Of a stretch of 64,000 nt of DNA, positions 22,029-60,854 are shown piece after piece; within the stretch, counting starts at the first letter, position 1, and every line of letters starts with the position of its first letter. The notes under the pieces are model-generated. The model worked only from the letters and a program-made list of their open reading frames with translations. It was not told the DNA's origin and ran no database searches. The position numbers were made by a program, and so were the translations under genes. The stretch spans positions 62,001 to 126,000 of the IMG/VR virus record IMGVR_UViG_3300017971_000001. The stretch is one strand, 5' to 3'.

Positions 22029-22065
22029 GCCTATGGGCAGGTAAATGGGCCCCCGCCGGGACCTG

Positions 22066-22524
22066 TTAGAACTTCTCGGGGACCTCAGGATCGTAGGGAG
22101 GAATGTGGAGGCCTCGCCTACGGAGCTCCTCTTTCGCTCGGTCAAACTGCTCGACCTCGACGTTGGACTTCGACTCGACAAGGGCAATGCCCGAGGTCCG
22201 GGCGATCAGGCCATTGCGAGCGCTCAGCGGATCCTCGACGCGAGCGTACGCCCAGCGATCGGCTAGGAAGATCTTGTTCCCGTTCTCGTCGGTGAACCCT
22301 AGCACGCCATGCATGCTGCGAGTGGGTCCGCTCTTCGTCCACCAGGTCGCAGCAGCGCTCCCTCGGTCGTCGTATCGAACGACGAGCCAAAGATCGCCCT
22401 GAAGAGACCCGCTCTCAGAGGCGGCTTTTCCTTCGTTCACGCAAGCAAGCGTGATCACGTAAACGCAGGTCAAGAACACGAGGAGCGCAAAGGCAGAGAG
22501 AACGATTCGATCGTTCTTGCTCAC
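22066..22524 (-). CDS. Membrane-anchored protein (paralogue of 22853-23308)
   Basis: N-terminal TM; shared VVRY.D.G...A.W.TK...F.D..G....L...Y....DP. Confidence 0.7.
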   Translation of the reverse strand: MSKNDRIVLSAFALLVFLTCVYVITLACVNEGKAASESGSLQGDLWLVVRYDDRGSAAATWWTKSGPTRSMHGVLGFTDENGNKIFLADRWAYARVEDPLSARNGLIARTSGIALVESKSNVEVEQFDRAKEELRRRGLHIPPYDPEVPEKF

Positions 22525-23535: not shown

Positions 23536-24035
23536 ATCGTCCTCATGAGGTATCCCGTCCCTTCGAACGGATCGGGGAGAAACTCAACCTTCAGAACCTG
23601 GAGGCGGACCCCTTCGTGGCGCAGGGCCGGAATTCCGCTGTGGACGAGGTCCGCGCAATGTCCGCAGAAGATAGGGTTCCTGCGGTTCCTGTGAATCCTT
23701 CGCTCGGGCTCGCGATTCATGTCGGCAATGCAGAGCTCGAACCTGCGCCAGTCGCTGTAATGAACGCGCTGGATCTTGCGGCACAACGACCAGCCGCCGT
23801 CCATTTCCGCGACCGGCTTCCTTCCAGTGACGAACTTCGTGATCCTGTATTGGAAGACGCAGGGCTGCCACGCATGGAGCTTGAAGGCGTTCGCAGTCTT
23901 TCCTTCGAGCCAGGCGACAGGGCCCTCATTGTTCAGCAGGCCCAAGCGCTCCCGCTCGAGCAGGTAGTTGAACTCGTCCTCCTTGGAGCCGGTGAGGGCG
24001 GCGCGCTCGAGTCGTAGCAGGCGTGCGTCGCTCAC
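23532..24035 (-). CDS. Hypothetical protein with SDxRLxRLER N-terminal module
   Basis: (V)SDARLLRLERAALTGSKEDEFNYLLERERLG. Confidence 0.7.
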   Translation of the reverse strand: MSDARLLRLERAALTGSKEDEFNYLLERERLGLLNNEGPVAWLEGKTANAFKLHAWQPCVFQYRITKFVTGRKPVAEMDGGWSLCRKIQRVHYSDWRRFELCIADMNREPERRIHRNRRNPIFCGHCADLVHSGIPALRHEGVRLQVLKVEFLPDPFEGTGYLMRTI

Positions 24036-24229
24036 TCGGACCTCGCCTCGATCGCGCGGATCACGCCGCGCAATCGGCGCACCTCCTTCAGCAGCGCCTC
24101 CTTCTCGAAGTTGAGCAGGTCGAGCTCGCGGATCGTGCCTGCATACTTTGGGTTGACGATCTCCCGCTCAGGCAGCTGCCCTTCTGCCCAGGCGCGCAAC
24201 TCGACCGTGTTGTCCGGGACTCTATCCAC
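24032..24229 (-). CDS. Hypothetical protein
   Basis: Coupled ORF. Confidence 0.6.
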   Translation of the reverse strand: MDRVPDNTVELRAWAEGQLPEREIVNPKYAGTIRELDLLNFEKEALLKEVRRLRGVIRAIEARSE

Positions 24230-24485
24230 GACCGGGCTCCGTCTCTTCGATCAGAGACTCTTCCCAGAGGTAGGAATCAGGCCCGCCGGTCTCAAGGCGG
24301 TAACGAAGGATCCTTGGGTCGAGCGAAGAGGGGTGGATCCCGCCTCCGTTGCCAGCAGCCCGGAAGACAGCAGGAGGCTCCACCTCCTCGAGGGCTTCTT
24401 GCTCGGTCTCGGTGAACACGTCGTAAACCAGTTCGATCCGAACCGGAACCCGAACCGTCCGGACGACCCGCTTCTCTTTGCTCAT
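24222..24485 (-). CDS. Hypothetical protein
   Basis: Coupled ATG (MSKEKR). Confidence 0.6.
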   Translation of the reverse strand: MSKEKRVVRTVRVPVRIELVYDVFTETEQEALEEVEPPAVFRAAGNGGGIHPSSLDPRILRYRLETGGPDSYLWEESLIEETEPGRG

Positions 24486-24865
24486 GAGCACTCTGCCCGC
24501 AGCATGGCGGCGAGCTCCTGGACCTTCTCTGCGCGCCTCATGTTCTCGACCCCCTCCTTCCAGTAATTGAGGGGCATGGATACGCCCGAGTGGACCGCCT
24601 CCATGGCCGAGATCATGCACCAGTGGCTCAGGTCGTAATCGATCCCGAGCTCCTCGCAGACGATCCATTCGACGGCGCGCGCCTCGACCTCCTGGCGGAC
24701 TCGATACGGGCGGTCGAGCTCCATGATCGCGGCGTGAATCTCTTCTCGGTCCCAGTTGCTCACTCCGAGCGACCAGCCGTGATATCCCTCGTGCGCCGCG
24801 TCGCGCGGCTCCTTGGCGTCGGACCCGTGCGCCTGGGCCCATTGGACGATCAGTTCGCTGTTCAT
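24482..24865 (-). CDS. Putative HExxH metalloprotein
   Basis: AAHEGYHG with downstream EVEARAVE. Confidence 0.5.
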   Translation of the reverse strand: MNSELIVQWAQAHGSDAKEPRDAAHEGYHGWSLGVSNWDREEIHAAIMELDRPYRVRQEVEARAVEWIVCEELGIDYDLSHWCMISAMEAVHSGVSMPLNYWKEGVENMRRAEKVQELAAMLRAECS

Positions 24866-25176
24866 TCGGGGATCTCGTAGACGGTCTTGACCTGCTTCGC
24901 CACGGGAACGATCACCGAATCGGCCTTGAAAATGATCATGCCCCTCGGCCCGGTGTTCGCGAAGTCCCAGGACCCGGCTCGGCTCTCGCATTCGCCGCGG
25001 ATATCCCGCTCGCTGAGCGCGCGAGGATCGACCTCGTCGTCCGAGAACTCGGCGAGCAGGTCGAGCAGGCCCTCGCGGGTGACATGGGTCAAGCGCACGT
25101 CGCCGTCCTCGGAGTTCTCGAGAATGAAGTAACCGGACTCCACCGGCTTCACCTTGCGCGGATTCTTCTTGGCCAC
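24862..25176 (-). CDS. Hypothetical protein
   Basis: Coupled ORF. Confidence 0.65.
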   Translation of the reverse strand: MAKKNPRKVKPVESGYFILENSEDGDVRLTHVTREGLLDLLAEFSDDEVDPRALSERDIRGECESRAGSWDFANTGPRGMIIFKADSVIVPVAKQVKTVYEIPE

Positions 25177-25179
25177 GAC

Positions 25180-25455
25180 CTAAGCTCCCACGTAGAGAAC
25201 TTCGACCCTGGGGCCCATGTCCTTCTCGAACTTCTTGCCGCCGTACTCGCCGAACTCGGGCGAGCCAGGGCGCTGATCGTGGGCTTCGCAGGTGTAGAAG
25301 ATCGCCTTGTGGAAGTTGTGATCGTGCGCCGCGACCACCACCGGCATGCTCTTGTCCTTGATCCCGGACAAATACTTCTCCAAGTCTCCAACGGTGTGCA
25401 TATCCTCGATCTCCTTGCTGGGTCGAATCCTATCCAGGAACTCCGACAGGTTCAA
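25180..25455 (-). CDS. Hypothetical protein
   Basis: High-GC3 ORF; start uncertain. Confidence 0.55.
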   Translation of the reverse strand: MNLSEFLDRIRPSKEIEDMHTVGDLEKYLSGIKDKSMPVVVAAHDHNFHKAIFYTCEAHDQRPGSPEFGEYGGKKFEKDMGPRVEVLYVGA

Positions 25456-28354
25456 TGAAATCCCATAAGAGCCTGCCTGTCGCTCGACCGCGCCCTTCGC
25501 CAACAGCGCCGCCGACGCCCCAGCCATTTCTCGGGAACGTGGTTCCAATGCAGTTCGAGCCCTGACCTCTTCCCGACCAGTTCCCGCGGAACGAACTGGA
25601 GACGCAGCCGAAGGCGTAAGCGGTTCCGGTCGATAGCCAGAATGGAACGCTGCCCTTAGCGCACCCCCGGCGCCTTCTTACCACCATTGAGGCAATCCCG
25701 ATTCGTGCTCCTTGTACCGCTCGAGCGGGCCACTTCTTCCCATGCCCGCCGTGAGCCCGCAGCCCAAAGAGAACCACTCCGCCCCGCGAAAGGTGCGAAG
25801 AACGCAGCCACGCGCGATCGCGAATCTGAGCGCGAGTCCGTAGGGGCTGCCGGCGCCCGATCCACACGACCCCTCCAGGCGGGAGTTTCTGGATCTTCGA
25901 CGCTTCACGGAGAGCCGCTACCTTGCATAGACGACATGCCCCAGCCAAGCCCTCTTTTGAAGTAGAAGTTGGCAGGGCCTGGGCCGCGGATTTGCCAGAT
26001 CCTGCCGGAGACGTAGCCCCGCCTACAAAAGAGCCCGCTTGACATACAGCCCCAGTGGAGGGCGGCACTCCTTCTTCTGCGCCTCACCAGTCGGACCCCA
26101 TTCCGATCCTTCGCTTGAGGCCGCGGCCCGTTGAGTAGGTGTCGGCCCAGGGCTTCGATCGGTTTGCAATCGAGGCGCTCCCGCTGGCCCGCATGCGCGT
26201 CATGGTTGACGTCCAGCGGGCAAGGAGGAACTCGTTCCCACAGGGGGATCCGCGCCCCCGGTCACCCGATCGATACGGCCGGTCGCTGCGGTGGGCGGTG
26301 TCGAGCATGATCCCGAAGCAGAGGCCGGTAAATCTTCGACGACGTTTCACGTCAACCTCGGCGGGGGTAGAAAATTGAATAGAACCTTCTGAGTCCTGAT
26401 CCGACCGCGCAGTAGTTGGACCCTCGGCCTCTGAAGCAGCCATGCCTGAACATGGCGAAGTCGCGCAACCCGCTCCCAGCGCCCCTTGAAAGCCCTCTTC
26501 TCCACATGCTCTTGCTGGAAGGCCTCCTTCGCCGTCTCATGACGACCTCCGAACTCGGAACCACTTCGCAGAACGACTCAGAGCTAGACCGAACGGGCGG
26601 CCGAGGCCATGCCCGAGCACAACCCTTGCGCGCTTCCAGCGTGTATATGAAACCAAGGACACCCGAATCCGATACTCCTGCGGAGGCCATAGCCATAGTC
26701 GTGGTGGTTGCTGTGACTATGAGTGACCAAGCCAATCCTGCGTCGACGCCTCATGAAGACCTCCGACGGAACCACTTCGCAGAGCGGCTTAAGCCTCGGC
26801 CGAACGAACGAAAGAGCCCGTAGCCCAGAACCCCCCTTGTAATCTTCCACCCCGGAAGGTCGGTGACCGGGTTACCGAAGCCGCGCTGCCTGTAGAGGCC
26901 GCAGCCGCGCTCACGAGGGTGAGTGCTGTGACCCCGGCCCTTGAGTTGAGTGATCAAGCCGGCCCTGCGTCGACGCCTCATGCAGACACTTGGATCCGCC
27001 GGACGTTTCCGGCCACCTTCCTCAGGCCGCGTCCCCAGCTGTTCGATTGGCCGTGCCCGCGCCGCCGTCTGTATCCACCAAGGTTCCTCCACCACCGAAT
27101 GCCGGCGCGGCTTGACCCGCCTCCCATTTCGCTTCGCAGTCCTGCCCCCGTCGACTTGCCGCTGCGTCGCCGAAAGACGGCTCCATGTCTTCTCCTGCGC
27201 TTCATAGGACCCAATAGGGTCCGGCGACGGACCTTCCAAAGCCGTGGCCCTTTGCCGTGCTCCACGGACCGTAGTCCCTGCCTCCGCCAAAGCTGCGAGA
27301 CTTCCCCCTCCCGAGCGCCGCCTTGGTCAAGCGCCTCCAGTTGGAAGCTGGTCTCCTCCTTCGCCTCATTGCCCGTATCCCAACCCGCCGAACAAACTCA
27401 CAAAGACGTACGGGTGGAACGGGCTCGGCACGTATCGACTGATCGCGCCGGACTTCATTGCATACCCCCTCGTCGACCAGAGCCCGCCGCCGCGGCCGAT
27501 CTTGTTCACAATCAACGCCTCGCCCCAGCGCATGCTCCAGTTGCGTGCTGTTCTTCTCCTTCGCTTCATTGAGAACGCCCGCGGAAGTGAAAAAAGGAGT
27601 GACGAATCCCTCGGCCGTACGACCGATTGGAGCCGCAGCCAGACAGTCGGATTCCATGACCAGGAACGACCAAGCACGACATGGCGAACCCCAGCCCGTA
27701 TCCACCTGCGCCGCCTCGAACCCAGACCTGCCTTCGTCTTCTGATCAAGAGAACACCCTTAGAGAGAACACCGAGCTCGAGTAGCCGCCGCAACCTCCGC
27801 CGCAGCCGAGCGCGTGGCCAATCCCAGCGCCGCACCTCGATTTCATTGAGACCAAGAGCTTGTCGCCCCACGTTGGATTGCCTCGCCCCATGTTCCGCCT
27901 TAGCCCGCTCCCGAGCCTGAGGATCTCTACGCCCTGGCCGTAGAGGCCCTGGAATCCCTTCCGGTGCCGGTGACGTCGCCTCATTGCCCGATTGGCCACC
28001 AGGCTGCCCTGTACCGCCTGAGCCCGTGTCCGCACTTCACCTTTGAGGAAATGAACGTGTCTGAACTAGGTGGCTGCCCCCTGCTGATCGAACGGCGAAT
28101 CCCGGACCCGAGGACGCGTGAAAGCGCAGGTACGAACGTGAACTTCAAGACTGAACTCCGGCGCCTCTTCATGACGGAAGCGTCTCCGGCTCCCTGAGCG
28201 AGTGACCACGGTAGACGCCTAGCCCTCGCCCGACGCTTGGCGCGTATCCGTAGCAAGAGCTCAAGCCGTAGCCGATCATGCTAAAGAGGCAGAGCGGCAG
28301 GCCGCTGATTTTCATAGTCCTTCGAAAGTAGACTTTTCGCCGAAGCCTCCTCAT
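25430..28354 (-). other. Cluster E: 14 tandem MxRRRR / Gly-rich peptide genes (one frameshifted)
   Basis: Members (-): 28169-28354, 27981-28172, 27745-27984, 27566-27748, 27366-27569, 27202-27369, 26978-27205, 26751-26981, 26537-26754 (fs), 26352-26540, 26084-26350, 25905-26087, 25678-25908, 25430-25687. Confidence 0.85.
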
Positions 28355-44418: not shown

Positions 44419-44767
44419 GCGCTTGATCCTGACCGGACGATCGCAGGTCCTGCAACTCGCTGTCAGCGAGCTCGTCAAGGAGGCGCGAAGCCTCGGCGTC
44501 GCAGCCGCCGTAGAGGTGCATGAGAACGAAGGTCATGCTCTCAGCGATCCCGCCCCAGACCACCAAGTCGGCGCTGAAGTCCCAAACGTCCTCCAGCAAC
44601 TCTCTGCGCTCTTGCTGCTCCTCCAGCGCCTCGGTCCGCGGGAGCTCGCGTGCCCGACGGGCGAACCGTCGGAGGGTGAGGCAGAACTCGTACTCGAGCT
44701 CGCCCGGCTTGGGGCCGTTTGTGTCGCGATCAGGATTCGGCGCCTTCCCCACGCTCACCCTCGTCAA
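44411..44767 (-). CDS. Hypothetical protein
   Basis: ORF in chain; start uncertain. Confidence 0.55.
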   Translation of the reverse strand: MTRVSVGKAPNPDRDTNGPKPGELEYEFCLTLRRFARRARELPRTEALEEQQERRELLEDVWDFSADLVVWGGIAESMTFVLMHLYGGCDAEASRLLDELADSELQDLRSSGQDQAHE

Positions 44768-45740
44768 TCTCGTCTGCCAACATGTTTCCGATCGCGCCCG
44801 CCTCGTCTCGGCGGTTGTCGTCGTATCGAATGAGCGTCTCGACGCTCTTGTGACGTGAGAACTTCTGGACGCGACGGACGTCGCCGTTGAGCCGGTCGAG
44901 CGCGCGCGTGATCGCAGCGTGTCGCAAGCCGTGCGGCCAGGTGTCGAGACCAGCGTTCTTGCCGATCTTCTTGACGATTTTGTGGACCGATCGCCCAGTG
45001 AGCCGCCCGTCGGAGCGGCGGCCGGCGCGATCGTAGGATTCGAACAGGGCGCCCGGGTGACTGCCGCGGCGCGCGATCCAGTCCCGCAGCGCCTCTGCCG
45101 TGCTCTCGGGGATCGTGACCTTGCGGCGCGCCTTGTCCCGCTTACCCAAGATCATGACGGTCTTCCGCTTGAGGTCAACGTGCTTCATGTCGAGGCCGAC
45201 GACCTCAAACCGACGCAGAGCCATGTCGTAGAGCATGCGCAGGATCGCGTAGTTGCGCCGGTCGAGATTGGAGTCGCCGAGCGTGCCGAGCATTTTGAGG
45301 AACCCGTCGTGGCCGGGGCCGCGGGTGTCCTTGTAGGTGTCGTTGCTGACGTTGGTGACGTCCAGCTGGTAGTTGCAGATCCCGAGCGTGTTGGCGAGCT
45401 TGATCATGCTGCGCAGCGCGGCGATCCGCCGGTTGACGGTGCCGGGTGCGTAGCTCTTCTCGTCGACCATGTATTGCTGGAACTCGAGGACGAGGTAGTT
45501 CGCGTCGCCGCGTCCCACGCTGAGCAGGGAGGCCGCGGCTTCGTCTACGGTCTCCACGCCCAGCCACTCGCAGAACACGCGAAGGTCACGCTGATAAGCG
45601 TCGACGGTGTTCTTGGACTTGTTGCGGAAGAAGGCCTGGATCAACTTTTCACTGTCTGATCCGGCCAACTTGTCGCGCACGGCGGGAGGCTGCGCGGCGC
45701 GTTTGGAGAGTTGCGTCTTCGGCTTGGCAGGCAGATCCAT
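44730..45740 (-). CDS. Tyrosine recombinase (XerC/D-like integrase/resolvase)
   Basis: SAM-like N-terminus (SKNTVDAYQRDL); LRRFEV (R), GKRDK (K), HGLRH, SRHKS..TL.RYDD (H, Y). Confidence 0.95.
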   Translation of the reverse strand: MDLPAKPKTQLSKRAAQPPAVRDKLAGSDSEKLIQAFFRNKSKNTVDAYQRDLRVFCEWLGVETVDEAAASLLSVGRGDANYLVLEFQQYMVDEKSYAPGTVNRRIAALRSMIKLANTLGICNYQLDVTNVSNDTYKDTRGPGHDGFLKMLGTLGDSNLDRRNYAILRMLYDMALRRFEVVGLDMKHVDLKRKTVMILGKRDKARRKVTIPESTAEALRDWIARRGSHPGALFESYDRAGRRSDGRLTGRSVHKIVKKIGKNAGLDTWPHGLRHAAITRALDRLNGDVRRVQKFSRHKSVETLIRYDDNRRDEAGAIGNMLADEIDEGERGEGAES

Positions 45741-46606: not shown

Positions 46607-47563
46607 CTAGGCGCCGGCTTCCTCCAGCTGGACCACGACGATCTTCAGATCGCTGAGGTAGGGCTTGTAGCTCGAGGGCGAGCGAATGAAGGCCGCCTCC
46701 TTGCCCTCGGCGTGGAGGTTCCACGCCTTGGCGAGGATCACGGACTTCATTTCGTTCGAGCGGCGCTTGGCGTTGGCGAACCAGGACTTGGCGATCGAGA
46801 TCGGCGAGCGGACGTTGCCGTCGTTCCCGCGCGCGACCTGATTCAGGAACTCCTCGACCTCGGACGCGGGGTTGCCGCAGGAAATGAGCCAGTAGTGCGC
46901 CGCGGCGTAGGAGACCGCCGTGTGCCCCCGGATCCCGTTGGTCGCCTTGTAGGCGAAGTTGACCGACTTCTGGATCTGGGCGTCCTTGCGGATCAGGTCG
47001 ATCTTCTCCTTGTGCGGGATCTTGCTGCGCGTGCGCTCCCGCTCCTGGATCAGCGTGCGAGCGAGGGCCATGGCCTCCTTGCCGTTCTTGAGGCCCTCGA
47101 TCTTGGCGACGTCGAAGGCGCTGCGGACCTTGCCGAGGTCGTAGTTGTAGACCTCGTCCACGGGGCGGTTGAGCAGGATCTCGACGCAGGCCGTCTTGCC
47201 AGACTTGATCACGGCGCGACAAACGTGCTGACCGTCAGCGAGCTCACCCTTCACGTTGAACTTGATCGGGTCCGTGCGGACGTGGTCGCCCTCGTTGAGC
47301 GAGCGAGCGATCTTGTCGACGTGCGCCTTCTGGAACTTGCGCTGCGCCGAAGCCATGAGCTCCAAGAACGCCGTAGCCCGGTCGACCGTGAGCGGGAAGT
47401 TGCTGACCCGGTCGCCCTCCGGGTCGATCGAGGGCATGCCGTTGACGACGTTGTAGCGCGGAGCGCTGTACTGCTGCAGCAGTTCACCGATCCGGTTGGG
47501 GTTGATCACCTTGGGGGTGTCTTCGGCCTTCTTCTTGACGACCTTGACCTTCTTCTTAGCCAT
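46607..47563 (-). CDS. ParB/Srx-like N-terminal domain protein
   Basis: QRKF...HVDKIARSL..G......DPIKF...GEL.DGQH...AVIKSG; the R of DGQHR is replaced by V. Confidence 0.75.
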   Translation of the reverse strand: MAKKKVKVVKKKAEDTPKVINPNRIGELLQQYSAPRYNVVNGMPSIDPEGDRVSNFPLTVDRATAFLELMASAQRKFQKAHVDKIARSLNEGDHVRTDPIKFNVKGELADGQHVCRAVIKSGKTACVEILLNRPVDEVYNYDLGKVRSAFDVAKIEGLKNGKEAMALARTLIQERERTRSKIPHKEKIDLIRKDAQIQKSVNFAYKATNGIRGHTAVSYAAAHYWLISCGNPASEVEEFLNQVARGNDGNVRSPISIAKSWFANAKRRSNEMKSVILAKAWNLHAEGKEAAFIRSPSSYKPYLSDLKIVVVQLEEAGA

Positions 47564-50356: not shown

Positions 50357-51160
50357 CTAACTAACTTCGGCCCCCCATGAAACCCATCCCTTCCTTTTTT
50401 TTCTGGAAAATAGCTCGAGCCTTCGCTCCATGTGAGGCCAGAGCTCTTCAATCTTCTCGTAAATGCTTTCCGGTTTCTCGCTGTGCGCGCCGACAGGGCC
50501 CTCAAGCTCAGCGCTCACGGACGTCGCCCCCTTTGCCCGGGGCGCGCTCCCCTTGATCGCCAGGGCTACAGGCTCGTAGCAACTCCTGCTATAGAAGCCC
50601 ATGCCGACGTAAAGCTTCCCGCTCTTGTAGGTCTTCCTCCAATTGAAAAGCTGGCCGGTCTTGAACTGGAAACCCCAGCTTTCAATCACCTTGATCGCTT
50701 CGGGGGTCTTGGGGCCGGTGTACCACATGATCAGCACGCAGTTTTCAGCGGCCAGAGAGTCCACAGGAAGCGCGGCGATCTCCTCCACCGTCATGCAGTA
50801 GTACTGGTCCTGGGCCTTACCCTGCTCCCCCACGCGCTTGTATTTCCAAGGCGGGTCAACAAGGATCAGATTGAACAGGCCCTTCCTGACATGCTTCTTC
50901 CTGAGGGCTCGCAGGCTATCGACAGTCTCCAGGAACGAGATAGGCTCGATCTTCTTGGTCCCGAAGTTCTTGGAGTCCTTCGGTTTCTTACGAGCCTTGC
51001 CCTTGACCTCGCCTTCCTTGGGCTCCCCCTTTGCCTTCTTGCGAGACTTGGAGGCGCTCTTCTTAGGAGGTTCGGAGGCGGACGGCTCCCCCTCGGAGCA
51101 CGTCCTGCGATTGTGTCCCTCCCCGCCGCACTTGCCGCACCTGACGATTCGCTTCTTCAT
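50357..51160 (-). CDS. MT-A70 family N6-adenine methyltransferase with N-terminal zinc knuckle
   Basis: LILVDPPWKY, Y.CMTVEEIAALPV, WGF..KT...W.K, HSEKPE, LELFSR; N-terminal CGKCGGEGHNRRTC. Confidence 0.92.
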   Translation of the reverse strand: MKKRIVRCGKCGGEGHNRRTCSEGEPSASEPPKKSASKSRKKAKGEPKEGEVKGKARKKPKDSKNFGTKKIEPISFLETVDSLRALRKKHVRKGLFNLILVDPPWKYKRVGEQGKAQDQYYCMTVEEIAALPVDSLAAENCVLIMWYTGPKTPEAIKVIESWGFQFKTGQLFNWRKTYKSGKLYVGMGFYSRSCYEPVALAIKGSAPRAKGATSVSAELEGPVGAHSEKPESIYEKIEELWPHMERRLELFSRKKRKGWVSWGAEVS

Positions 51161-51194
51161 GCCGGAAGGATAGCTACTGGCTCCGACAAGGGCC

Positions 51195-51937
51195 GTGGCA
51201 GGTAAATAGGCCCCTGTCATGAAGGCCGCATGGCGGAGCGAAAGCAGCGTGACAGGTAAATAGGCCCCTGCCAGGACTTGTTGCTCGAGTCCGCCGCCGA
51301 CCAAGCCCTCGGGCTGCTCAGTGTGACAGGTAAATAGGCCCCTGCCAGGACTTGTTGCTTGGGGTCAGCCGCGGAGCAAAGGGAGTCTGCTGTCGTAGCA
51401 GGTAAATAGGCCCCTGCCAGGACTTGTTGCGACCTCGCCCCTCGTCGAGGTCGTCGGCGAGGTGGCAGGTAAATAGGCCCCTGCCAGGACTTGTTGCCAC
51501 CCGCCGCCTCAAGGGCGGCTCTCGGTATCAGAAGTGGCAGGTAAATAGGCCCCTGCCAGGACTTGTTGCCAGAAAAATCGCCTCCTACATATAGGGGGTC
51601 GCCCTCAAGTGGCAGGTAAATAGGCCCCTGCCAGGACTTGGTGTGTCATGCAGCACTTCTTGGACGCGATCAAGGTTGCCCGCGTGGCAGGTAAATAGGC
51701 CCCTGCCAGGACTTGTTGCCGGCACGATCCCGCTCGCGACGCTGGAGTCGTGGCAGGTAAATAGGCCCCTGCCAGGACTTGTTGCCCGCTGGGCAGAGGA
51801 GGCAAAGGTGGCCTCGGGTCTCGTGGCAGGTAAATAGGCCCCTGCCAGGACTTGTTGCGGCGCTCAATCGCGATCGCAACGCGCCGCCCACCGACCCCTC
51901 TGTGGCAGATAAATAGACCCCTGCCAGGACTTGTTGC
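51195..51937 (-). CRISPR. CRISPR array: 10 full 36-nt repeats plus 1 degenerate terminal repeat; 9 full spacers of 30-43 nt
   Basis: Plus-strand consensus GTGGCAGGTAAATAGGCCCCTGCCAGGACTTGTTGC at 51249, 51323, 51395, 51462, 51534, 51609, 51684, 51750, 51823, 51902; degenerate copy at 51195. Transcribed sense GCAACAAGUCCUGGCAGG-GGCCUAUUUA-CCUGCCAC forms a 3' hairpin ending in AC. Confidence 0.98.
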
Positions 51938-51947
51938 GCCGTGCCTC

Positions 51948-54071
51948 CTAAGCCTCTTCGCCGCCTTCGTTTTTGCGCTTCATTTCGAGCGCTCGCTTTT
52001 TCGCAATCGTCTTCCTCCTTCGCTTGTTGGGCTTTTCGCTGTAAGTCCACACCTCGTCCGGCTCGAGCGCCGGTCGATCCCAGTTCACCTTCGCGCCGCT
52101 CGCGGCGAGGAGGTTGCGAGACGCGTTCACGTCTCGATTCCAGGTCTCTCCACAAGAGCAGGTGAACACCTGCGCAGAGCCGAGGCTGCGGTTCCGCTTC
52201 CCGCAAGACCAGCAGGTCTGGCTCGTGTAGGCCGGGTTCAGCGTGTCGATATCCTCGAAGAAGACGTTCTGAAGCGACTTCTTGAGAACGCTCAGCGCCG
52301 CGTGCCTCTTGTTCTTGTTGATCCGGTCCTGCTTCTTGTTGTCGCCCGCCTTGTTTCGCTCTTGCATGTGCGCGAGGTTCATTTCCTCGATCACGCAGTT
52401 CTTGTAGCGCCTCCCCATGTCGCGGGCGAATCGACGGTAAAGGTCCCGCCTGCTCCCCTGCAGCTGGCCGCGGAGAGGATCGCGCCAATCGGGCCCGAGG
52501 TGGAGTTGGCGGCCACGCCAGTGCCAGAGCCAGTCGAGGCAGCTGTCCTCGTCCTGGTCGCGCCACTTCTTGACGAGCTTGGACAGCTTCTTCGGGCTCC
52601 TGAACTGGTGAAGGTTCTTGAACTCCTTCCGGAGGCCTTTCGGAATACAGCCCCGCCCTTCGACCTTGAAGTAAGCGATCAGGTTATCGACCGCTTCGTT
52701 GAAGTCCTTCTTCACGAGGCTCTGGAGGTTCTCCACCTGCTTGGCCTCTCGAAGCCACCAGCAAGGCAAAGCGACCTTGCCCTCCCTGCCGTCGCTCCCG
52801 GAGAACGTCGCGACGACGATCGAGCCGTTGTCGTAGCGCCAGCCGACGTCGATCGCGACGGTGCCTTCCTTCGCTCGGTCCGGACGGGGTCCGACGTCAG
52901 CAAGGCTCAGCTGAACCGACCACTTCAGGCGACGCCCCTCCTTCTTTCGAACGACCTTGGCGTGAGTGATTCGGACTCCCTCAGGGATCTCGCGCTTCAT
53001 GAAGAACGGGATTCGAGCCCAGACGGGCTTCTTCCCCTCACTCCTTACGCGGAGGTAGAGGATCGCGTCACCCCTCTTGGCCGCGCGGTCCCTTCCCGCC
53101 ACCCAGACGCCAGTCGGATACCGAACGATTCGGGCATGGCCCTGGCCCAGGTCGCCGCTGAAGATTACCTCAGGGGCCTGCTTCTCCCGCGACTGGTAAG
53201 TCTGGCCACCAATAATTCCAGAGCCGTCCCAACTCTTGAACTTCGGCGGGGGGCCCTTCCGGTGTTGACGGAGTGCCTCGTGACGCGTGTTCCTGGTGTT
53301 CCAGTGTAGTTCAGGAAACCGCTCGCGTCCCTCCTTGGCGGCGTCGCTCTTCGCGTCGTCGAAAGCCTTCTTGTCGTAGGAGTCCAACTCGCGCGCCTCT
53401 TTGCATATTTTTTGCCGATCCTCCCAGGCATTCTTGAGCTTTTTGTGAAGCGCGGAGATCTCCGCCCTCTCTTCCGGGGTGAGCGTATCGTCTCGATTCT
53501 TCGAGTTGCGCTTGCGCTGCTCTTCGTGAACAGCATGAAGCGCCTTCTTGATCGCTGCGTACTTCGCGTCGGCCTCAAGGATCTCGTCCTTCAACTCGGT
53601 CTTGAGCATGAACTTCATGTCAAGGTCGCGCATGCTGTGGTCGATCTCCACAGTGTCGTTGCGCATGCGCTGACTGTGGAAGAAGTGATCGTCGACGAAC
53701 TCGACGCCCTCGAGGAGCAGACCTTCTTCATGCGCACGCCGCCGCATTTCGGCGGAGATCAGGTCTTTGTTGACGCGGTCGCCTTGCTCAGCAAGCTGGC
53801 CCAGGAATCGGTGCTCATTCTCGAACCCGAGGGGAAGGGTTCGGTTCGCCGGGTACTTGTAGACCCGAACCCCCGTGTCCTTGTACTTGATACCCTTTTC
53901 CTTGTCCTTCTCCTTGGCCTTCTTCTTGGCCTTGTTCCGCTTGCGCATGCGCGCACGCTGGGCCTCGCGCAACTCTTCCTTGCTGCGCTTCTTGCGCCCG
54001 CCACGCTTCTTGGTCTTGCTCTGAGTCGTCACGACCCCCCCCCTCCTCACTTGAGCTCCCATCATACTCAC
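51948..54071 (-). CDS. cas12m: Type V CRISPR effector, Cas12m (V-M / V-U1, C2c4)-like; likely start GTG 54032
   Basis: RVYKY, LHWNT.N, F..WDGSG.IG.Q, TVAIDVGWR (RuvC-I), QFRSPKKL, RRDLYRRFA, VIEEMNL (RuvC-II), TSQTCWSCG...CSCG..WNRDVNASRNL (Zn finger, RuvC-III); directly upstream of the array. Confidence 0.82.
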   Translation of the reverse strand: MSMMGAQVRRGGVVTTQSKTKKRGGRKKRSKEELREAQRARMRKRNKAKKKAKEKDKEKGIKYKDTGVRVYKYPANRTLPLGFENEHRFLGQLAEQGDRVNKDLISAEMRRRAHEEGLLLEGVEFVDDHFFHSQRMRNDTVEIDHSMRDLDMKFMLKTELKDEILEADAKYAAIKKALHAVHEEQRKRNSKNRDDTLTPEERAEISALHKKLKNAWEDRQKICKEARELDSYDKKAFDDAKSDAAKEGRERFPELHWNTRNTRHEALRQHRKGPPPKFKSWDGSGIIGGQTYQSREKQAPEVIFSGDLGQGHARIVRYPTGVWVAGRDRAAKRGDAILYLRVRSEGKKPVWARIPFFMKREIPEGVRITHAKVVRKKEGRRLKWSVQLSLADVGPRPDRAKEGTVAIDVGWRYDNGSIVVATFSGSDGREGKVALPCWWLREAKQVENLQSLVKKDFNEAVDNLIAYFKVEGRGCIPKGLRKEFKNLHQFRSPKKLSKLVKKWRDQDEDSCLDWLWHWRGRQLHLGPDWRDPLRGQLQGSRRDLYRRFARDMGRRYKNCVIEEMNLAHMQERNKAGDNKKQDRINKNKRHAALSVLKKSLQNVFFEDIDTLNPAYTSQTCWSCGKRNRSLGSAQVFTCSCGETWNRDVNASRNLLAASGAKVNWDRPALEPDEVWTYSEKPNKRRRKTIAKKRALEMKRKNEGGEEA

Positions 54072-54104
54072 ACCCCTCCGACAGGTAGCGTAAGCCTTTG
54101 CCAG

Positions 54105-54488
54105 CTAAGACGCTTCGAGCTTCGCCAGCCCCTCGCGGAGCATGGCGCGAAACTCGTCCTCGAGCTTCATGGCGCGGTGAGCCTGGCCGAGCATGCTGCG
54201 CACGGACGTCAGGTCCTTCGGCTTGGGGTAGTCGCCCTGGCGGTTCATGAAGCTGTAGGCCTCCTCGATCACGGAGAGCGACTTCTGCTCCTTCTCGGTC
54301 AGCGGAAGAGGCTCGACGCCTTCGACCAGGTTGTGGCCGCGGACGACCTGGCGCACGTACTGGTTGCCGGTCCACACGTAGGCAGCCACGATCGTCTGGT
54401 TGCCCTCGACGCGCAGGCGCTCGATCTCGTCACGAACGGCCTGCTGCTTGCGGGCCTTGTTGGCCAACTTGTTCCTCTTCGCGCTCAA
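54105..54488 (-). CDS. Hypothetical protein
   Basis: Coupled ORF, high GC3. Confidence 0.7.
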   Translation of the reverse strand: MSAKRNKLANKARKQQAVRDEIERLRVEGNQTIVAAYVWTGNQYVRQVVRGHNLVEGVEPLPLTEKEQKSLSVIEEAYSFMNRQGDYPKPKDLTSVRSMLGQAHRAMKLEDEFRAMLREGLAKLEAS

Positions 54489-54844
54489 CGGGGCGCCTCC
54501 TTCTTGGTCACGATCTTTCGGTAAAGGCCCCCGGCTCCGGGTTCCTTGCTGCAGTAAAGGTGAGAGGCGATCTCGCCCCAGAGGCTCGCCTGAACGCGAA
54601 CCCAGCCCGGCTGACTCTCCTCGTCGACGAGCGCCTGCCCCGTCTCCGCTCCGTCCACGACGACCCTCGCGCCGGACTCTTCGAGGTCGCGGATCAACTC
54701 GTGGATCGTGTCGCAGGGAGGGATCTCGACAGGCGCTTGGTCCGCCAACTTCTTCGCCAGGACGAGCGAGAGGCCGAGGTGCTGGCGTAGGTCCTTGATC
54801 ACCGAGATCTTTCGGTGGCCCGTGCTCTCGAGGACAACTTTCAT
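54485..54844 (-). CDS. Ribosomal protein bL12 C-terminal-domain-like protein
   Basis: MKVVLESTGHRKISVIKDLRQHLGLSLVLAKKLADQAPVEI.....IRDLEESGARV. Confidence 0.8.
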   Translation of the reverse strand: MKVVLESTGHRKISVIKDLRQHLGLSLVLAKKLADQAPVEIPPCDTIHELIRDLEESGARVVVDGAETGQALVDEESQPGWVRVQASLWGEIASHLYCSKEPGAGGLYRKIVTKKEAPR

Positions 54845-54917
54845 AGGGACAACACTCCGATCAGGAGGATCAAACCAAGGCAGGCGGCCTGGAACAACCG
54901 CCACTCTTCCTCAGGCG

Positions 54918-55439
54918 TCAAATCGCGGCCCACCTAGGAGCACGCGGAGCTCGCAGGCGCGGGCAGGTCGCCATGGGAGACAGCGCCGACTGGGGAACGA
55001 AGAACGCCGGACGACCGGTGCCAGGATCCCTCCAGAACTTCTGCCGCTTGCCGTGCTCTCCGTAGATCCAGCCACGCAGCTGGAGGTAGGGAGCCCGGCC
55101 CGTGACGAGCACGAAGGGCCGGTGATCGGGCGAGGTCGCGTGGAGGATCAGACTTCCGTCCAAGCGAGGCGTCGTACGAACCTCGATCTCCCCCACGTCG
55201 CCGGCGCCGAACTCTCCGAACGACCCGCTCCAGAACATGTCCATGTAGCGCGCGACCGCGAGCTCGCCGGCGGCGCCTTCGACGTGAATCGACCAGCCGT
55301 TCGACGACCCGTTGGTGAGGCCGTGCTTATGCTGAAGTCCGTTCATGACGTTAGTGGCTTGGCGCTGAATTCCGACCTGCGCAGCAAGGCGGAACTCGCT
55401 CGGAGTGAGCGTAATCGGCACGGGGGCAGGGGCGGTCAT
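54918..55439 (-). CDS. Putative PD-(D/E)xK-like phage nuclease
   Basis: EGAAGELAVARY...GDVGEIEVRTT...FVLV...GW...FVPQSAL. Confidence 0.55.
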   Translation of the reverse strand: MTAPAPVPITLTPSEFRLAAQVGIQRQATNVMNGLQHKHGLTNGSSNGWSIHVEGAAGELAVARYMDMFWSGSFGEFGAGDVGEIEVRTTPRLDGSLILHATSPDHRPFVLVTGRAPYLQLRGWIYGEHGKRQKFWRDPGTGRPAFFVPQSALSPMATCPRLRAPRAPRWAAI

Positions 55440-55441
55440 TC

Positions 55442-55705
55442 TTAGCTCCGCTTCTCTAGAGCAGCCCGGCCAGGCAGGCTGAGGGCAGCGATCTTTTCCC
55501 AGCCCAACTCCCTGAAAAGGGCCTCGAAGGTCGCTCTGTAGCAGGTGTCGTAAGTGCCTTCGTGGCTTGCCGTCGAGGTGCCCGTTCGGAGGCACTCGTC
55601 CCGCTGCCGGATCGCGCGCTCGCCCTCCCAGATCGCCAGGAAGGAGAGCGCGTCAAGGACCGTATCCTCTTCGAGCGCGCGGTCGAGTGCCTCCTTGAGG
55701 TTCAC
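55442..55705 (-). CDS. Hypothetical protein
   Basis: Coupled ORF. Confidence 0.65.
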   Translation of the reverse strand: MNLKEALDRALEEDTVLDALSFLAIWEGERAIRQRDECLRTGTSTASHEGTYDTCYRATFEALFRELGWEKIAALSLPGRAALEKRS

Positions 55706-56436
55706 GCGTAAGCCTGTCGCTGTCGCTCGATCTCGCCAGCCACGTCAGGAGTCGGGTGACCCGGCGCCTTAATGAACTTGCCCGTCACGGGGTCCTTGCT
55801 GGCCGTTGCGATCTTGAGCAGGTTGTTCTCGTCCACGAGCTCGAGCAGCGGGCGGTTCTTCAGGCCGCAGGCGCTCATGGTCCCGATCGTCACGACCGAG
55901 ATATCGACGCAACCGTCCGCGATCTCGGTCAGGTCGGGATCGTGGGTGGCTGCGAACTCGAGACCGTCGAACTCGACCTTCGTCCCCTCGGCCCGCACCG
56001 TCACGCCGAGGGCCTCGATCGTCTCCAGGCACTCCTCGAGAATCAGGCGCGCCCGAAGCGTCCGCGTGTGGGCGTCGGGGACCGTCGGCACCTGAGGCAC
56101 TTCTTGGCCGAACCCGTACATCATGTGTTCGACGCGAATCTGGTGATTCGTCTGGTCGCGGTGCTTCGTTTCGACCTCGACGGGCGCGGCCTCAGCGATC
56201 GCGTCGTTGTAGGTGTCCTCACCGAGCCCGTCGAGCTCAGCCAAGCGACGGAGGCCATACCAGACCGCCTTGCCGACCTGCTCACGCAGGACACCCTTCT
56301 TGTTCCAGCGCGAGAGGTATTTGCCCACGTTCCACAGCAGCGCGTCCCGCTCGAGTCCCCAGGCCTTCAGGACCTTGATCGTCTCGTAGGCGTTCTCCTT
56401 GCCGCCGTAGTGATCCGGGTGATCGACCGAGCTCAC
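55702..56436 (-). CDS. DUF3310 domain fused to a MazG-like nucleotide pyrophosphohydrolase
   Basis: VDHPDHY...ETI...NVGKY.SR..KK......KAVWY, then LRARLILEECLE...EIADGCVDI.VV..G...V.ENN..K...GKFIK. Confidence 0.85.
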   Translation of the reverse strand: MSSVDHPDHYGGKENAYETIKVLKAWGLERDALLWNVGKYLSRWNKKGVLREQVGKAVWYGLRRLAELDGLGEDTYNDAIAEAAPVEVETKHRDQTNHQIRVEHMMYGFGQEVPQVPTVPDAHTRTLRARLILEECLETIEALGVTVRAEGTKVEFDGLEFAATHDPDLTEIADGCVDISVVTIGTMSACGLKNRPLLELVDENNLLKIATASKDPVTGKFIKAPGHPTPDVAGEIERQRQAYA

Positions 56437-56645
56437 AGGCCCTCCTTCACGTTGTTGATCAGGACCGAGGTCGCCTGCGGCCACTGCTCACGCGCCTGGT
56501 AGCTGGCGTGCGCCGCCGCGGCCTTGGAGTCGTCGGCGAAGACGTCGTAAGACTGCCACCAGCGGGAGTCGCGACTCAGCCGACCCTTCTCGCCCATTTC
56601 CTGGTGGCGGCACTCGACACGGACACGAAACATGGATCCAGACAC
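56433..56645 (-). CDS. Hypothetical protein
   Basis: AAGGAGG SD just downstream of an orphan CRISPR repeat. Confidence 0.65.
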   Translation of the reverse strand: MSGSMFRVRVECRHQEMGEKGRLSRDSRWWQSYDVFADDSKAAAAHASYQAREQWPQATSVLINNVKEGL

Positions 56646-56667
56646 AGCGACCTCCTTGTTGAGGAAA

Positions 56668-56742
56668 GTGGCAGGTAATAGGCCCCTGCCAGGAATTGTT
56701 GCCGAGAATGGCAGGCAAATAGGCCCTTGTTGGACTTACTGC
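56668..56742 (-). repeat. Two degenerate orphan CRISPR repeats 5 nt apart
   Basis: GTGGCAGGTAATAGGCCCCTGCCAGGAATTGTTGC (56668-56702) and ATGGCAGGCAAATAGGCCCTTGTTGGACTTACTGC (56708-56742). Confidence 0.85.
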
Positions 56743-56804
56743 CACCCGCCGCACCAACCTAACAACCCCAGCCGACAAGTTCACGGAAAACTAAAGGTGG
56801 CAAG

Positions 56805-57344
56805 GTGAAAACCTGGATCTTGTCCGACCGGAGTCGTATCCTGGCCCCAGCAACGGAACGGGACTGGCAAGGGAGGACCGTGGACGGAATCGGAACGATC
56901 AATCACCTTTTGCAGCCGCCCCCGAAGCGAACTCGCCCCCGCCGTTGCAGCGTCGAAGGGTGCTCGAAGCCGACGAGGGAGAACAAGCCGGTCTGTACCG
57001 ACCATGTGCTTGAGCTCCCCTATGCACGCCGGGTTGCAGAAATGGCCCAGCGGATCGAGAAAGAGCACAAAATGCTCCTCCGGGGCCGGCGCCCGAACCA
57101 AGAATGGCTCCTGGTTGAGGACGCGCTGATCTCGATCGCCTTCCAGGAAGAGGAGGAGGTCCCGACGGTCAAGATCTGCAGGACGTGCGACGTCCCTCCC
57201 AAGCTTGCGCTCAAGCTGGCGCGGGCCGGCGGGCTTAGCTACCGAGCTCGGAGGCGGAGTCACGTCTTCAACGTGAAGGACGCGCGCAAGATCGTGATCG
57301 CGCGAATCATTGGCCGTGACGGGCCCAGGGCGCGCAGGTCGTAA
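56805..57344 (+). CDS. Zn-finger protein (paralogue of 43963-44418)
   Basis: RCSVEGC.K.T...KPVCTDH....PYA.RV. Confidence 0.65.
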   Translation: MKTWILSDRSRILAPATERDWQGRTVDGIGTINHLLQPPPKRTRPRRCSVEGCSKPTRENKPVCTDHVLELPYARRVAEMAQRIEKEHKMLLRGRRPNQEWLLVEDALISIAFQEEEEVPTVKICRTCDVPPKLALKLARAGGLSYRARRRSHVFNVKDARKIVIARIIGRDGPRARRS

Positions 57345-58353: not shown

Positions 58354-58426
58354 GCTGGAGTAGCTCAACCGGCAGAGCACTCGCCTTGTAAGCGAACGGC
58401 TGCGGGTTCGACCCCCGCCTCCAGCT
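58354..58426 (+). tRNA. tRNA-Thr(TGT)
   Basis: Acceptor GCTGGAG/CTCCAGC, D arm TAGCTCAACCGGCAGAGC, anticodon loop CTTGTAA, T loop GTTCGAC; no encoded CCA. Confidence 0.92.
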
Positions 58427-58584
58427 TGCGCAGCCCGCGACGGTCGCGGTGCGTCGCGCGTTCAAGTGGTTACGTTTTTAAAGTGAGTCAGGAACGATCA
58501 GCGAGAATCGTTAAGCGCGCGCTTCGGATACGGGGAGTCCTGCACGGCTCAACACCGACCCCCTGCAAAGCGCGCTCTCGTCAT

Positions 58585-58656
58585 GGCCCCGTCGACTAGT
58601 GGTTAGGTCACCAGCCTTTCAAGCTGGCTGCGCGGGTTCGAGTCCCGTCGGGGTCA
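58585..58656 (+). tRNA. tRNA-Glu(TTC)
   Basis: Acceptor GGCCCCG/CGGGGTC, anticodon arm CCAGC-CTTTCAA-GCTGG, T loop GTTCGAG. Confidence 0.92.
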
Positions 58657-58669
58657 AAGGAGAAGAGAA

Positions 58670-60818: not shown

Positions 60819-60854
60819 GCGGCAGGTAAATAGGCCCCTGCTAGGACTTGCTGC
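60819..60854 (-). repeat. Solitary CRISPR repeat
   Basis: GCGGCAGGTAAATAGGCCCCTGCTAGGACTTGCTGC, 33/36 identical to the array consensus. Confidence 0.9.

Follow-up and report, generated by a model that had tools for sequence, protein, structure and literature searches.

Why should a large phage keep a CRISPR effector gene and a CRISPR array without any adaptation gene, and does an effector with an intact RuvC triad necessarily cut DNA? These questions are raised by a locus on the minus strand of a 64,000-nucleotide (nt) stretch, here called the window, which represents bases 62001-126000 of one 245,276-bp contig, IMG/VR record IMGVR_UViG_3300017971_000001 (the same sequence as JGI contig Ga0180438_10000045). 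Its gene, cas12m, encodes a type V-M effector and is followed at once by a CRISPR array. An original prediction, made from the letters alone, took the locus for a virus-borne, minimal type V system and its protein for a possibly nuclease-active intermediate between TnpB and Cas12m. The first part of that statement has held up and the second has not. We rather think that this is a phage-encoded type V-M locus without an adaptation module, in which binding guided by CRISPR RNA (crRNA) probably silences competitors or host genes. Its parts, in window coordinates, are as follows.

51948..54071, minus strand: cas12m, type V-M effector gene; 707 residues from the first GTG, 694 in the database call
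52848..52850, minus strand: RuvC-I residue D408 in the motif IDVGWR, an invariant alignment column
52386..52388, minus strand: RuvC-II residue E562 in the motif VIEEMNL, an invariant alignment column
52131..52133, minus strand: RuvC-III residue D647 in the motif WNRDVNA, an invariant alignment column
52152..52214, minus strand: TNB zinc ribbon, CxxC…CxC, with C620, C623, C638 and C640, all four invariant (Pfam PF07282, 8.8e-13)
53868..54071, minus strand: K/R-rich N-terminal extension, about residues 1-68, absent from most family members
51938..51947, minus strand: gap of 10 nt between the TAG stop and the first repeat, with no separate leader
51194..51937, minus strand: CRISPR array of 10 full 36-nt repeats, a truncated terminal repeat and 10 spacers

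Is the protein a genuine Cas12m (type V-M, formerly V-U1)? This identity is well supported, because profile and fold matches, the zinc ribbon, the pseudoknot, stem and AC tail of the putative crRNA and the lack of a trans-activating crRNA (tracrRNA) all agree with it. The open reading frame (ORF) of 694-707 residues has every Cas12m-parallel motif that had been quoted for a protein of about 700 residues (WDGSG at 281, TVAIDVGWR at 403-411, QFRSP at 489, DLYR at 543 and HAAL at 590). The PADLOC model Cas12u1 (V-U1, since renamed V-M) matches it at 3e-74 over positions 4-530 of 533, and a PADLOC model labelled Cas12f (PDLC01692) scores nearly the same (2.5e-70); solved Cas12f structures reach only about 40 bits, and the label of that model thus appears to cover the same V-U1 group. 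Pfam detects only the Cas12f1-like TNB zinc ribbon, and the NCBIfam model guided_TnpB gives 22 bits against a cut-off of 100 bits. A direct sequence search of PDB finds 23vw, a 577-residue 'CRISPR-associated DNA-binding protein Cas12m' (3.5e-43, residues 122-658), whose chain also reads D, E and D where the triad aligns. When a profile of the window protein and ten relatives is run against PDB, full-length matches are obtained with 23vw (1e-139), Cas12m2 8hhl/8hio (1e-66), GoCas12m 8pm4 (1e-65) and UnCas12m4a 23vu (7e-56). The five Cas12m chain sequences score 193-470 bits and all others less than 50 bits, and TnpB, Fanzor and Cas12f match at 1e-12 or weaker, in the C-terminal RuvC/TNB part only. 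MmCas12m2 and GoCas12m are too distant for a pairwise phmmer search and are found by the profile only. A structural comparison of the whole fold leads to the same family: an AlphaFold2 model built from a 59-sequence alignment (predicted local distance difference test score, pLDDT, 84.9; predicted template-modelling score, pTM, 0.79) has four Cas12m structures, 8hhl, 8hio, 8pm4 and 8hhm, as its top Foldseek matches, with template-modelling (TM) scores by target of 0.70-0.72, and Cas12f and TnpB stand at about 0.5. The protein is therefore placed by its full-length matches with Cas12m rather than with TnpB or Cas12f; its assignment to a clade within Cas12m is based on profile scores together with the triad pattern.

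With the solved Cas12m proteins (23vw, the closest, 8hhl/8hio, 8pm4 and 23vu) it shares the fold, the zinc-ribbon TNB and similarity over the full length, and those systems likewise have a single crRNA with pseudoknot, stem and AC tail, no tracrRNA, a gene-adjacent array and no adaptation genes. It differs from them in about 100 extra N-terminal residues (the K/R extension and a 40-residue insert), a basic helical tail, a crRNA loop of 10 nt instead of 8-9 nt, and its place on a lytic-type jumbo phage genome with the array 10 nt past the stop. TnpB of IS200/IS605 elements has the RuvC D-E-D and the TNB zinc ribbon in common with it. However, TnpB is a protein of about 350-450 residues; the window protein is about 300 residues longer, with the large REC and the helical insertions of Cas12m, its profile match to TnpB is limited to the C-terminal 125 residues, and its locus has a CRISPR array in place of TnpA, transposon ends or an omega-RNA overlap. 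A TnpB or IS200/IS605 identity is ruled out by this array in the place of the omega-RNA, by the length of 694-707 residues and by the low guided_TnpB score. Cas12j (CasPhi) of huge phages likewise pairs a compact type V effector with a small array on jumbo phage genomes and lacks adaptation genes, but it belongs to a different subtype (TM about 0.27, sequence E 0.15). In CasPhi, both DNA cutting and crRNA processing are carried out by the RuvC site.

What, then, does the D-E-D triad tell us? D, E and D had been read correctly at the three RuvC positions, and D408, E562 and D647 occupy invariant columns of the alignment with relatives. It had also been regarded as established that characterised Cas12m proteins have a degenerate RuvC, which is inaccurate. 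The division of Cas12m into four clades already includes the D-E-D clades 3 and 4 (PMC10442227), into which the window triad fits, and triads in the family also include H-D-D, N-D-D and H-E-K. Bigelyte et al. tested eight orthologues, four of them D-E-D, and found cleavage of double-stranded DNA (dsDNA) in none and binding dependent on a protospacer-adjacent motif (PAM) in six; D-E-D, H-D-D and N-D-D proteins were all without dsDNA cleavage, and Cas12m of Meiothermus and of Gordonia showed neither target nor collateral cleavage (PMC11013384). Even a change of H-D-D to D-E-D in Cas12m2 did not restore cutting (PMC10442227). D-E-D is found in 136 of the 154 closest relatives aligned (about 88%) and in 24 of 25 viral and mobile-element loci, the remaining one having D-K-D, and triads other than D-E-D are scattered over the tree as single tips. 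Thus, D-E-D is the ancestral and common state of this part of the family. The window protein lies well inside Cas12m with no sign of an intermediate, and its triad is no evidence for nuclease activity. Retention of D-E-D implies that selection acts on the triad residues. In the structure of Cas12m2, the RuvC centre is a pocket that holds the non-target strand via one Mg ion and, by analogy, such metal-mediated strand holding can explain why D-E-D has been retained.

The array gives a consistent picture. Its full repeats run from 51902-51937 down to 51249-51284, and the terminal repeat consists of the 3' 29 nt only (51195-51223). The eight internal repeats are identical or have at most two differences, and both end repeats are degenerate. 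In order, the spacers are 43, 37, 30, 39, 39, 36, 31, 36 and 38 nt long, followed by one of 19 nt before the truncated repeat, so that the range of 30-43 nt given originally is correct apart from this last one; such irregular lengths argue against an integrase of the ruler type. Cas12m2 and PmCas12m use only about the first 17-20 nt of the guide, and the range should therefore be tolerable. The array had been described as starting 10 nt after the stop codon with no room for a leader, and the gap after TAG is exactly 10 nt. The same gap is found in the relative P0002 (loci L002/L003), and in other viral or mobile-element loci it ranges from -33 to 174 nt; arrays begin within about 3-40 nt of the stop in ten of these, two of which overlap it.

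In the orientation of the gene, the repeat forms a 6-bp stem (GGCAGG/CCUGCC), which is followed by AC and then by the spacer. When the repeat structure is compared among 18 related loci, viral or on mobile elements, the stem is always at -8 to -3 and its sequence changes are fully compensated. A segment 2 nt upstream of the stem pairs with the first three bases of the loop to form a 3-bp pseudoknot, which covaries across the same loci (GCC/GGC, ACC/GGU, GGG/CCC, GGC/GCC and others), and the 3' tail is AC in 17 of them. The crRNA of Cas12m2 has a pseudoknot, a stem, A(-2) and C(-1) (PMC10442227). Since the repeat has the architecture of this crRNA, the array should be transcribed in the same direction as the gene. 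Within 10 kb on either side of the locus, the repeat has no antisense counterpart of more than 12 nt that could belong to a tracrRNA or anti-repeat, and neither a sigma-70-like promoter nor a minus-strand terminator is found in 50900-57000, including between gene and array. The simplest reading would be co-transcription of gene and array followed by self-processing.

How might such a locus work? The cas12m gene and the abutting array would be transcribed as one RNA, probably together with the same-strand genes upstream. Cas12m would bind each repeat through the pseudoknot, the 6-bp stem and the 3' AC, and would cut the precursor upstream of that scaffold, so that a crRNA with a repeat-derived 5' handle and a guide, used over about its first 17-20 nt, may be produced. 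The complex would then bind PAM-flanked dsDNA of a competing phage, a plasmid or the host and block transcription or replication without cutting, the D-E-D pocket holding the displaced strand via a metal ion without hydrolysis. Use against competitors or host genes, as originally suggested, is plausible.

Is the locus a peculiarity of one phage? An exhaustive search gave 458 clusters at E<1e-30. In the tree, the window protein and P0002 share a long branch of 1.21 substitutions per site, which sits in a well-supported five-member clade with P0155, P0009 and P0061. P0155 comes from a contig of 160 kb in the same metagenome as the window phage, on which T4-type genes for capsid, portal and sheath are found, P0009 from a 76-kb contig of small genes without assignment, and P0061 lies beside a resolvase and a Dam methylase. 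A wider 17-member clade, which includes P0007 and P0006/P0154, also has phage- or mobile-element-like neighbourhoods. In GenBank, Virus Rctr197k (KX853510, 197 kb) encodes a 622-residue homologue whose sole annotation is 'similar to transposase', and the record marks a CRISPR of about 20 repeats behind the gene. This homologue belongs to the opposite half of the tree, and phages have therefore acquired Cas12m at least twice. A scan of IMG/VR with two peptide patterns only returned 28 loci, namely the window's own fragment and 27 loci on 26 other contigs of up to 202 kb, and a downstream array is present in 15 of the 19 distinct viral loci examined. Such viral loci consist of a gene for 507-706 residues and, downstream on the same strand, an array that has a period of about 72 nt and shares the architecture of the window repeat, yet their proteins are only 24-35% identical to the window protein. 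One of them, on a T4-like contig of the same metagenome (L005/L062, IMGVR_UViG_3300017971_000201), lies between structural genes and encodes a Cas12m of its own with 35% identity; its array (L005 11973-12362) has six repeats, begins 8-10 nt past the stop and contains one spacer twice in tandem. No cross-targeting between the window phage and this contig is seen in the parts compared.

Virus-borne Cas12m is therefore not new. Besides Rctr197k and the 26 IMG/VR contigs, a review in 2024 placed V-M on plasmids and 'some prophages' (PMC11656645), viral effectors of landfill viromes reported in 2025 cluster with Cas12m/V-U1 (PMC12607003), and MvCas12m of myxophage MV-1, reported in 2026, is likewise phage-encoded with D-E-D, an adjacent array and neither cas1/2/4 nor a tracrRNA, its array being without spacer matches according to its authors (bioRxiv 10.64898/2026.09.14.751636). 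Compared by description, not sequence, MvCas12m has 610 residues, D305/E463/D555 (spacings 158/92) and 8 spacers, and the window system has 694-707 residues, D408/E562/D647 (spacings 154/85) and 10 spacers; identity of the two proteins is ruled out by length, triad positions and spacer number.

The viral origin of the window is borne out by the record itself. The 245,276-bp genome (62% GC) has direct terminal repeats and a CheckV completeness of 100% in IMG/VR. Viral status is taken from this record, CheckV and gene content, because the hallmark Pfam models for terminase, HK97 capsid and sheath have no match anywhere in the genome. The Pfam models of Cas1, Cas2 and Cas4 have no match either across the complete genome, which extends what had been stated for the window; absence of cas1/2/4 is typical of V-U/V-M loci. 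The cas12m gene is the sole TNB-domain gene of the genome. A second sample yielded an IMG/VR fragment with the identical locus, which is also found in three sequencing runs, seen there as assembler contigs in which the array is collapsed. Elsewhere in the window there are a tyrosine integrase-like gene (44730-45740, minus strand, phrog_1 9e-30), which is unexpected in a 245-kb phage with direct terminal repeats if strictly lytic, and two phage tRNA genes on the plus strand, Thr(TGT) at 58354-58426 and Glu(TTC) at 58584-58657.

The N-terminal part of the protein deserves a separate look. A K/R-rich extension of about 50 residues had been noted; it is real and about 65 residues long, with 28 K and R among the first 70 residues and a predicted helix of modest confidence, and the basic C-terminal tail noted with it is real too, and is also common to relatives. 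The first WED strand, VRVYKY, lies at about residues 69-74, an insert of about 40 residues follows it, and homology to other family members starts at about residue 108-123; P0007 and P0002 have a similar extension. To judge from the sequence, the start codon is uncertain by about ten codons. The likely starts are GTG codon 14 at 54032, used in the 694-residue call and preceded by a GGAGG box, or the ATG codons 3/4 at 54065/54062, preceded by a GGAGGGG box. One low-depth contig of the third run has lost 2 nt at 54035, between the first GTG/ATG starts and GTG codon 14, which weakly favours the shorter form. K/R tracts (42-70% K+R over 40 residues) occur in eight ORFs of the phage including Cas12m and an MT-A70 methyltransferase (others are, for example, at genome positions 23-736, 23679-25934 and 205764-206342), and the basic extension would thus be a trait of the phage proteome and not of Cas12m alone. 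Against the 79%-identical relative, the ratio of nonsynonymous to synonymous substitution rates (dN/dS) is 0.25 overall, 0.22 in the core, 0.39 in the extension and 0.41 in the 40-residue insert, which indicates that the whole protein, additions included, is under purifying selection.

The locus is flanked on the same strand by the following genes.

50357..51160, minus strand: MT-A70 family DNA methyltransferase (Pfam PF05063, 2.6e-28), directly downstream of the array, with a K-rich N-terminal region
54105..56645, minus strand: upstream same-strand gene run of a 127-residue ORF, an L7/L12 C-terminal-domain protein, two small ORFs, a DUF3310/MazG-like protein and a 70-residue ORF

The cas12m gene and its array are probably transcribed together with this upstream run, which shows partial synteny with the relative L002. 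Two of its members may be mentioned here. A gene with the C-terminal domain of ribosomal protein L7/L12 (54485-54904, minus strand, Pfam 6e-10) lies two genes upstream of cas12m and is kept in L002/L003, and a fusion of DUF3310 with a MazG/PRA-PH-like pyrophosphohydrolase (55702-56484, minus strand) has a counterpart in the relative.

Are there any repeats outside the array? A repeat-profile search of the genome found five solitary copies at four intergenic sites, with nothing else above noise.

56668..56745, minus strand: solitary repeat pair in a divergent intergenic region, near-intact at 56668-56702 and degenerate at 56710-56745
60819..60854, minus strand: solitary repeat with 3 mismatches in a 485-nt intergenic gap between minus-strand genes
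22034..22069, minus strand: solitary repeat with 8 mismatches, its stem kept via a G-U pair (nhmmer E 1.7e-8)
241870-241905 of the genome, outside the window, plus strand: solitary repeat 41 nt ahead of the next ATG

All five are co-oriented with the flanking genes, and three end 5-41 nt ahead of a start codon. The stem and the AC tail are kept in the 241870 and 56668 copies, and the other three are partly degenerate. The 56668 pair stands at the head of the minus-strand gene run leading to cas12m; its near-intact copy is followed after 8 nt by an AAGGAGG box and after 22 nt by the GTG of ORF 56433-56645. In comparison with the homologous intergenic region of the 79%-identical relative (L002), which lacks the pair, it appears as an insertion of about 92 nt. 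The sequence after it is native 5' untranslated region and not an acquired spacer, and the 15 nt ahead of it resemble the 3' end of spacer 6. No promoter is recognized around 56668-56745, the one site of the four that was scanned. The 22034 copy lies between two minus-strand genes and ends 5 nt ahead of an ATG, and the 241870 copy comes after a terminator-like hairpin that follows a repeat-rich protein of 858 residues rich in glycine, alanine and threonine. The protein encoded after the 241870 copy has a basic N-terminal start (MSKSRKPRRRKGSPK), below the threshold of the K/R scan.

Four other Cas12m phages were checked for such copies: G002, G003 (both covered by loci L071-L074), Rctr197k and the T4-like contig. 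G002 (UViG_3300022723_000184, 202 kb) has three, at 46773, 124139 and 136027, each preceded by 7 nt and a -10-like box of the type that also stands ahead of the first repeat of its array. Two of them are antisense to a convergent gene and extend into its 3' end, and the guide of the 124139 copy matches a second promoter-like element at 189125-189153 in 28 of 29 positions; this element occurs exactly twice. G003 (UViG_3300036987_000083, 179 kb) has a single copy at 154374; a terminator hairpin directly precedes it, and a ribosome-binding site with its start codon follows 7 nt further on. No copy is present in Rctr197k or the T4-like contig, so that three of the five Cas12m phages examined, the window phage included, carry solitary repeats. 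Single intergenic repeats are likewise known in phages as Racr RNA anti-CRISPRs (PMC10651486) and as crRNA-like regulatory RNAs, which make use of the Cas proteins of the host (bioRxiv 10.1101/2024.10.29.618823). The examples described so far, however, imitate repeats of the host and are 'not associated with cas genes', whereas the copies in the window phage are cognate to its own Cas12m and mostly lie in 5' untranslated regions of phage genes. They match the phage's own array, and a search of 185,579 species genomes for the repeat core gave a single chance coding match, inside the ORF of a 567-residue protein of a 30%-GC Bacteroidota, and hence no host array with the same repeat; eight metagenome matches to the repeat, besides the phage's own contig, were also judged to be chance. 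The layout of solitary repeat plus native flanking sequence resembles the scaffold and flanking guide of TnpB omega-RNA. Possible roles of these copies are a Cas12m-bound leader controlling translation or mRNA processing, promoter targeting in trans, an omega-RNA-like arrangement, or debris of recombination.

How firmly can the silencing of competitors or host genes by binding be held? We regard it as fairly probable, and several results weigh against it. No protospacer was found by blastn-short with the 10 spacers and the solitary-repeat guides against the own genome, complemented by seed-anchored and Hamming searches, nor with the spacers against GenBank phages and PLSDB plasmids, with exact 22-mers of S2, S4, S5, S8 and S9 against IMG/VR, or with the spacers against the 27 other IMG/VR Cas12m-family loci and those loci's arrays against the window genome. 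No run found in the public archives is shown to hold RNA of the phage, by a search that was not RNA-specific. The binding scheme assigns no role to the N-terminal extension or the 40-residue insert, the tested D-E-D orthologues are bacterial and 25-35% identical to a window protein that sits on a long branch, and with about 88% of relatives keeping D-E-D a conditional role as nuclease or nickase is conceivable. Two complete Cas12m phage genomes gave no spacer target either, and the best spacer matches overall are at chance level (17-19 nt, GC-rich, outside arrays). Spacer 7 (51431-51461) agrees with genome 41886-41901 in 16 of 16 nt at its positions 6-21 (E 0.001), which was judged to be chance because the sequence is GC-rich and coding-like and the five PAM-proximal bases are mismatched. 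The search for a PAM through spacer targets, which the original prediction had called for, thus yielded no targets and hence no PAM. Could Cas12m instead be a working RNA-guided nuclease or nickase, which destroys the DNA of competitors or the host? The intact, invariant D408, E562 and D647, the constraint implied by 136 of 154 relatives and the divergence of the window lineage from the assayed orthologues speak for it. Nevertheless, we consider it unlikely, as four D-E-D orthologues did not cleave dsDNA, MsCas12m showed neither target nor collateral cleavage, the triad restored in Cas12m2 did not bring back cutting, the overall fold is that of Cas12m in common, and the documented role of the acidic pocket in DNA binding could account for its conservation.

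The solitary repeats suggest yet another use, in which Cas12m is the phage's own programmable regulator: crRNAs of the array and the solitary units would guide it to phage or host promoters, or it would mask ribosome-binding sites or process mRNA at crRNA-like 5' untranslated regions. Cas12m is a natural transcription blocker (PMC11013384), and the co-oriented intergenic copies close to start codons, the two with stem and AC tail retained, the copies in two of the four other Cas12m phages and the promoter-like boxes and guide match of G002 would all suit such a function. On the other hand, neither guides nor spacers have a second-site match in the window's phage genome, partial degeneration has affected three of the five copies, the closest relative lacks the 56668 pair, which is thus not conserved, and the copies could be array debris shifted by recombination, for which reasons we find this regulation doubtful. 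A related idea, offered just as tentatively, is that Cas12m jumbo phages may use their own single repeats ahead of genes as guide units with the adjacent native sequence as guide, following the omega-RNA logic of the TnpB ancestor; they might then control their own genes through masking of the ribosome-binding site or promoter binding, or act on repeat-less alleles of co-infecting relatives in exclusion or homing. It might finally be supposed that the locus is a decaying passenger without function, captured recently from a plasmid or bacterium, whose array can no longer be updated. Missing adaptation genes and leader, degenerate end repeats, irregular spacers and the lack of targets would be expected of it. 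This is very improbable, however, given an intact 2.1-kb ORF under a dN/dS of 0.25 against a relative with the same gene-array junction, eight internal repeats of near identity, invariant catalytic and zinc-binding residues and the recurrence of the same architecture in many large phages. Silencing by crRNA-guided binding is what we prefer.

What does the locus mean for Cas12m and for phages? As an ordinary Cas12m locus of its class, it adds a complete jumbo-phage example, and the 26 further IMG/VR contigs obtained with two peptide patterns tell us that Cas12m is widespread in large phages. An intact D-E-D is the norm of the family and has so far been paired with binding and not with cutting, which corrects a tempting inference from the triad. 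Two questions can now be put concretely: what keeps D-E-D so highly conserved if the family seemingly does not cut DNA, and what do cognate solitary repeats do ahead of phage genes? If phages do use these repeats as guide units, a CRISPR effector carried by a phage would be programmed for a function that goes beyond interference through its array. If functional, the solitary repeats would provide a compact programmable repressor with natural single-guide units, which bears on phage biology and on tool design as well.

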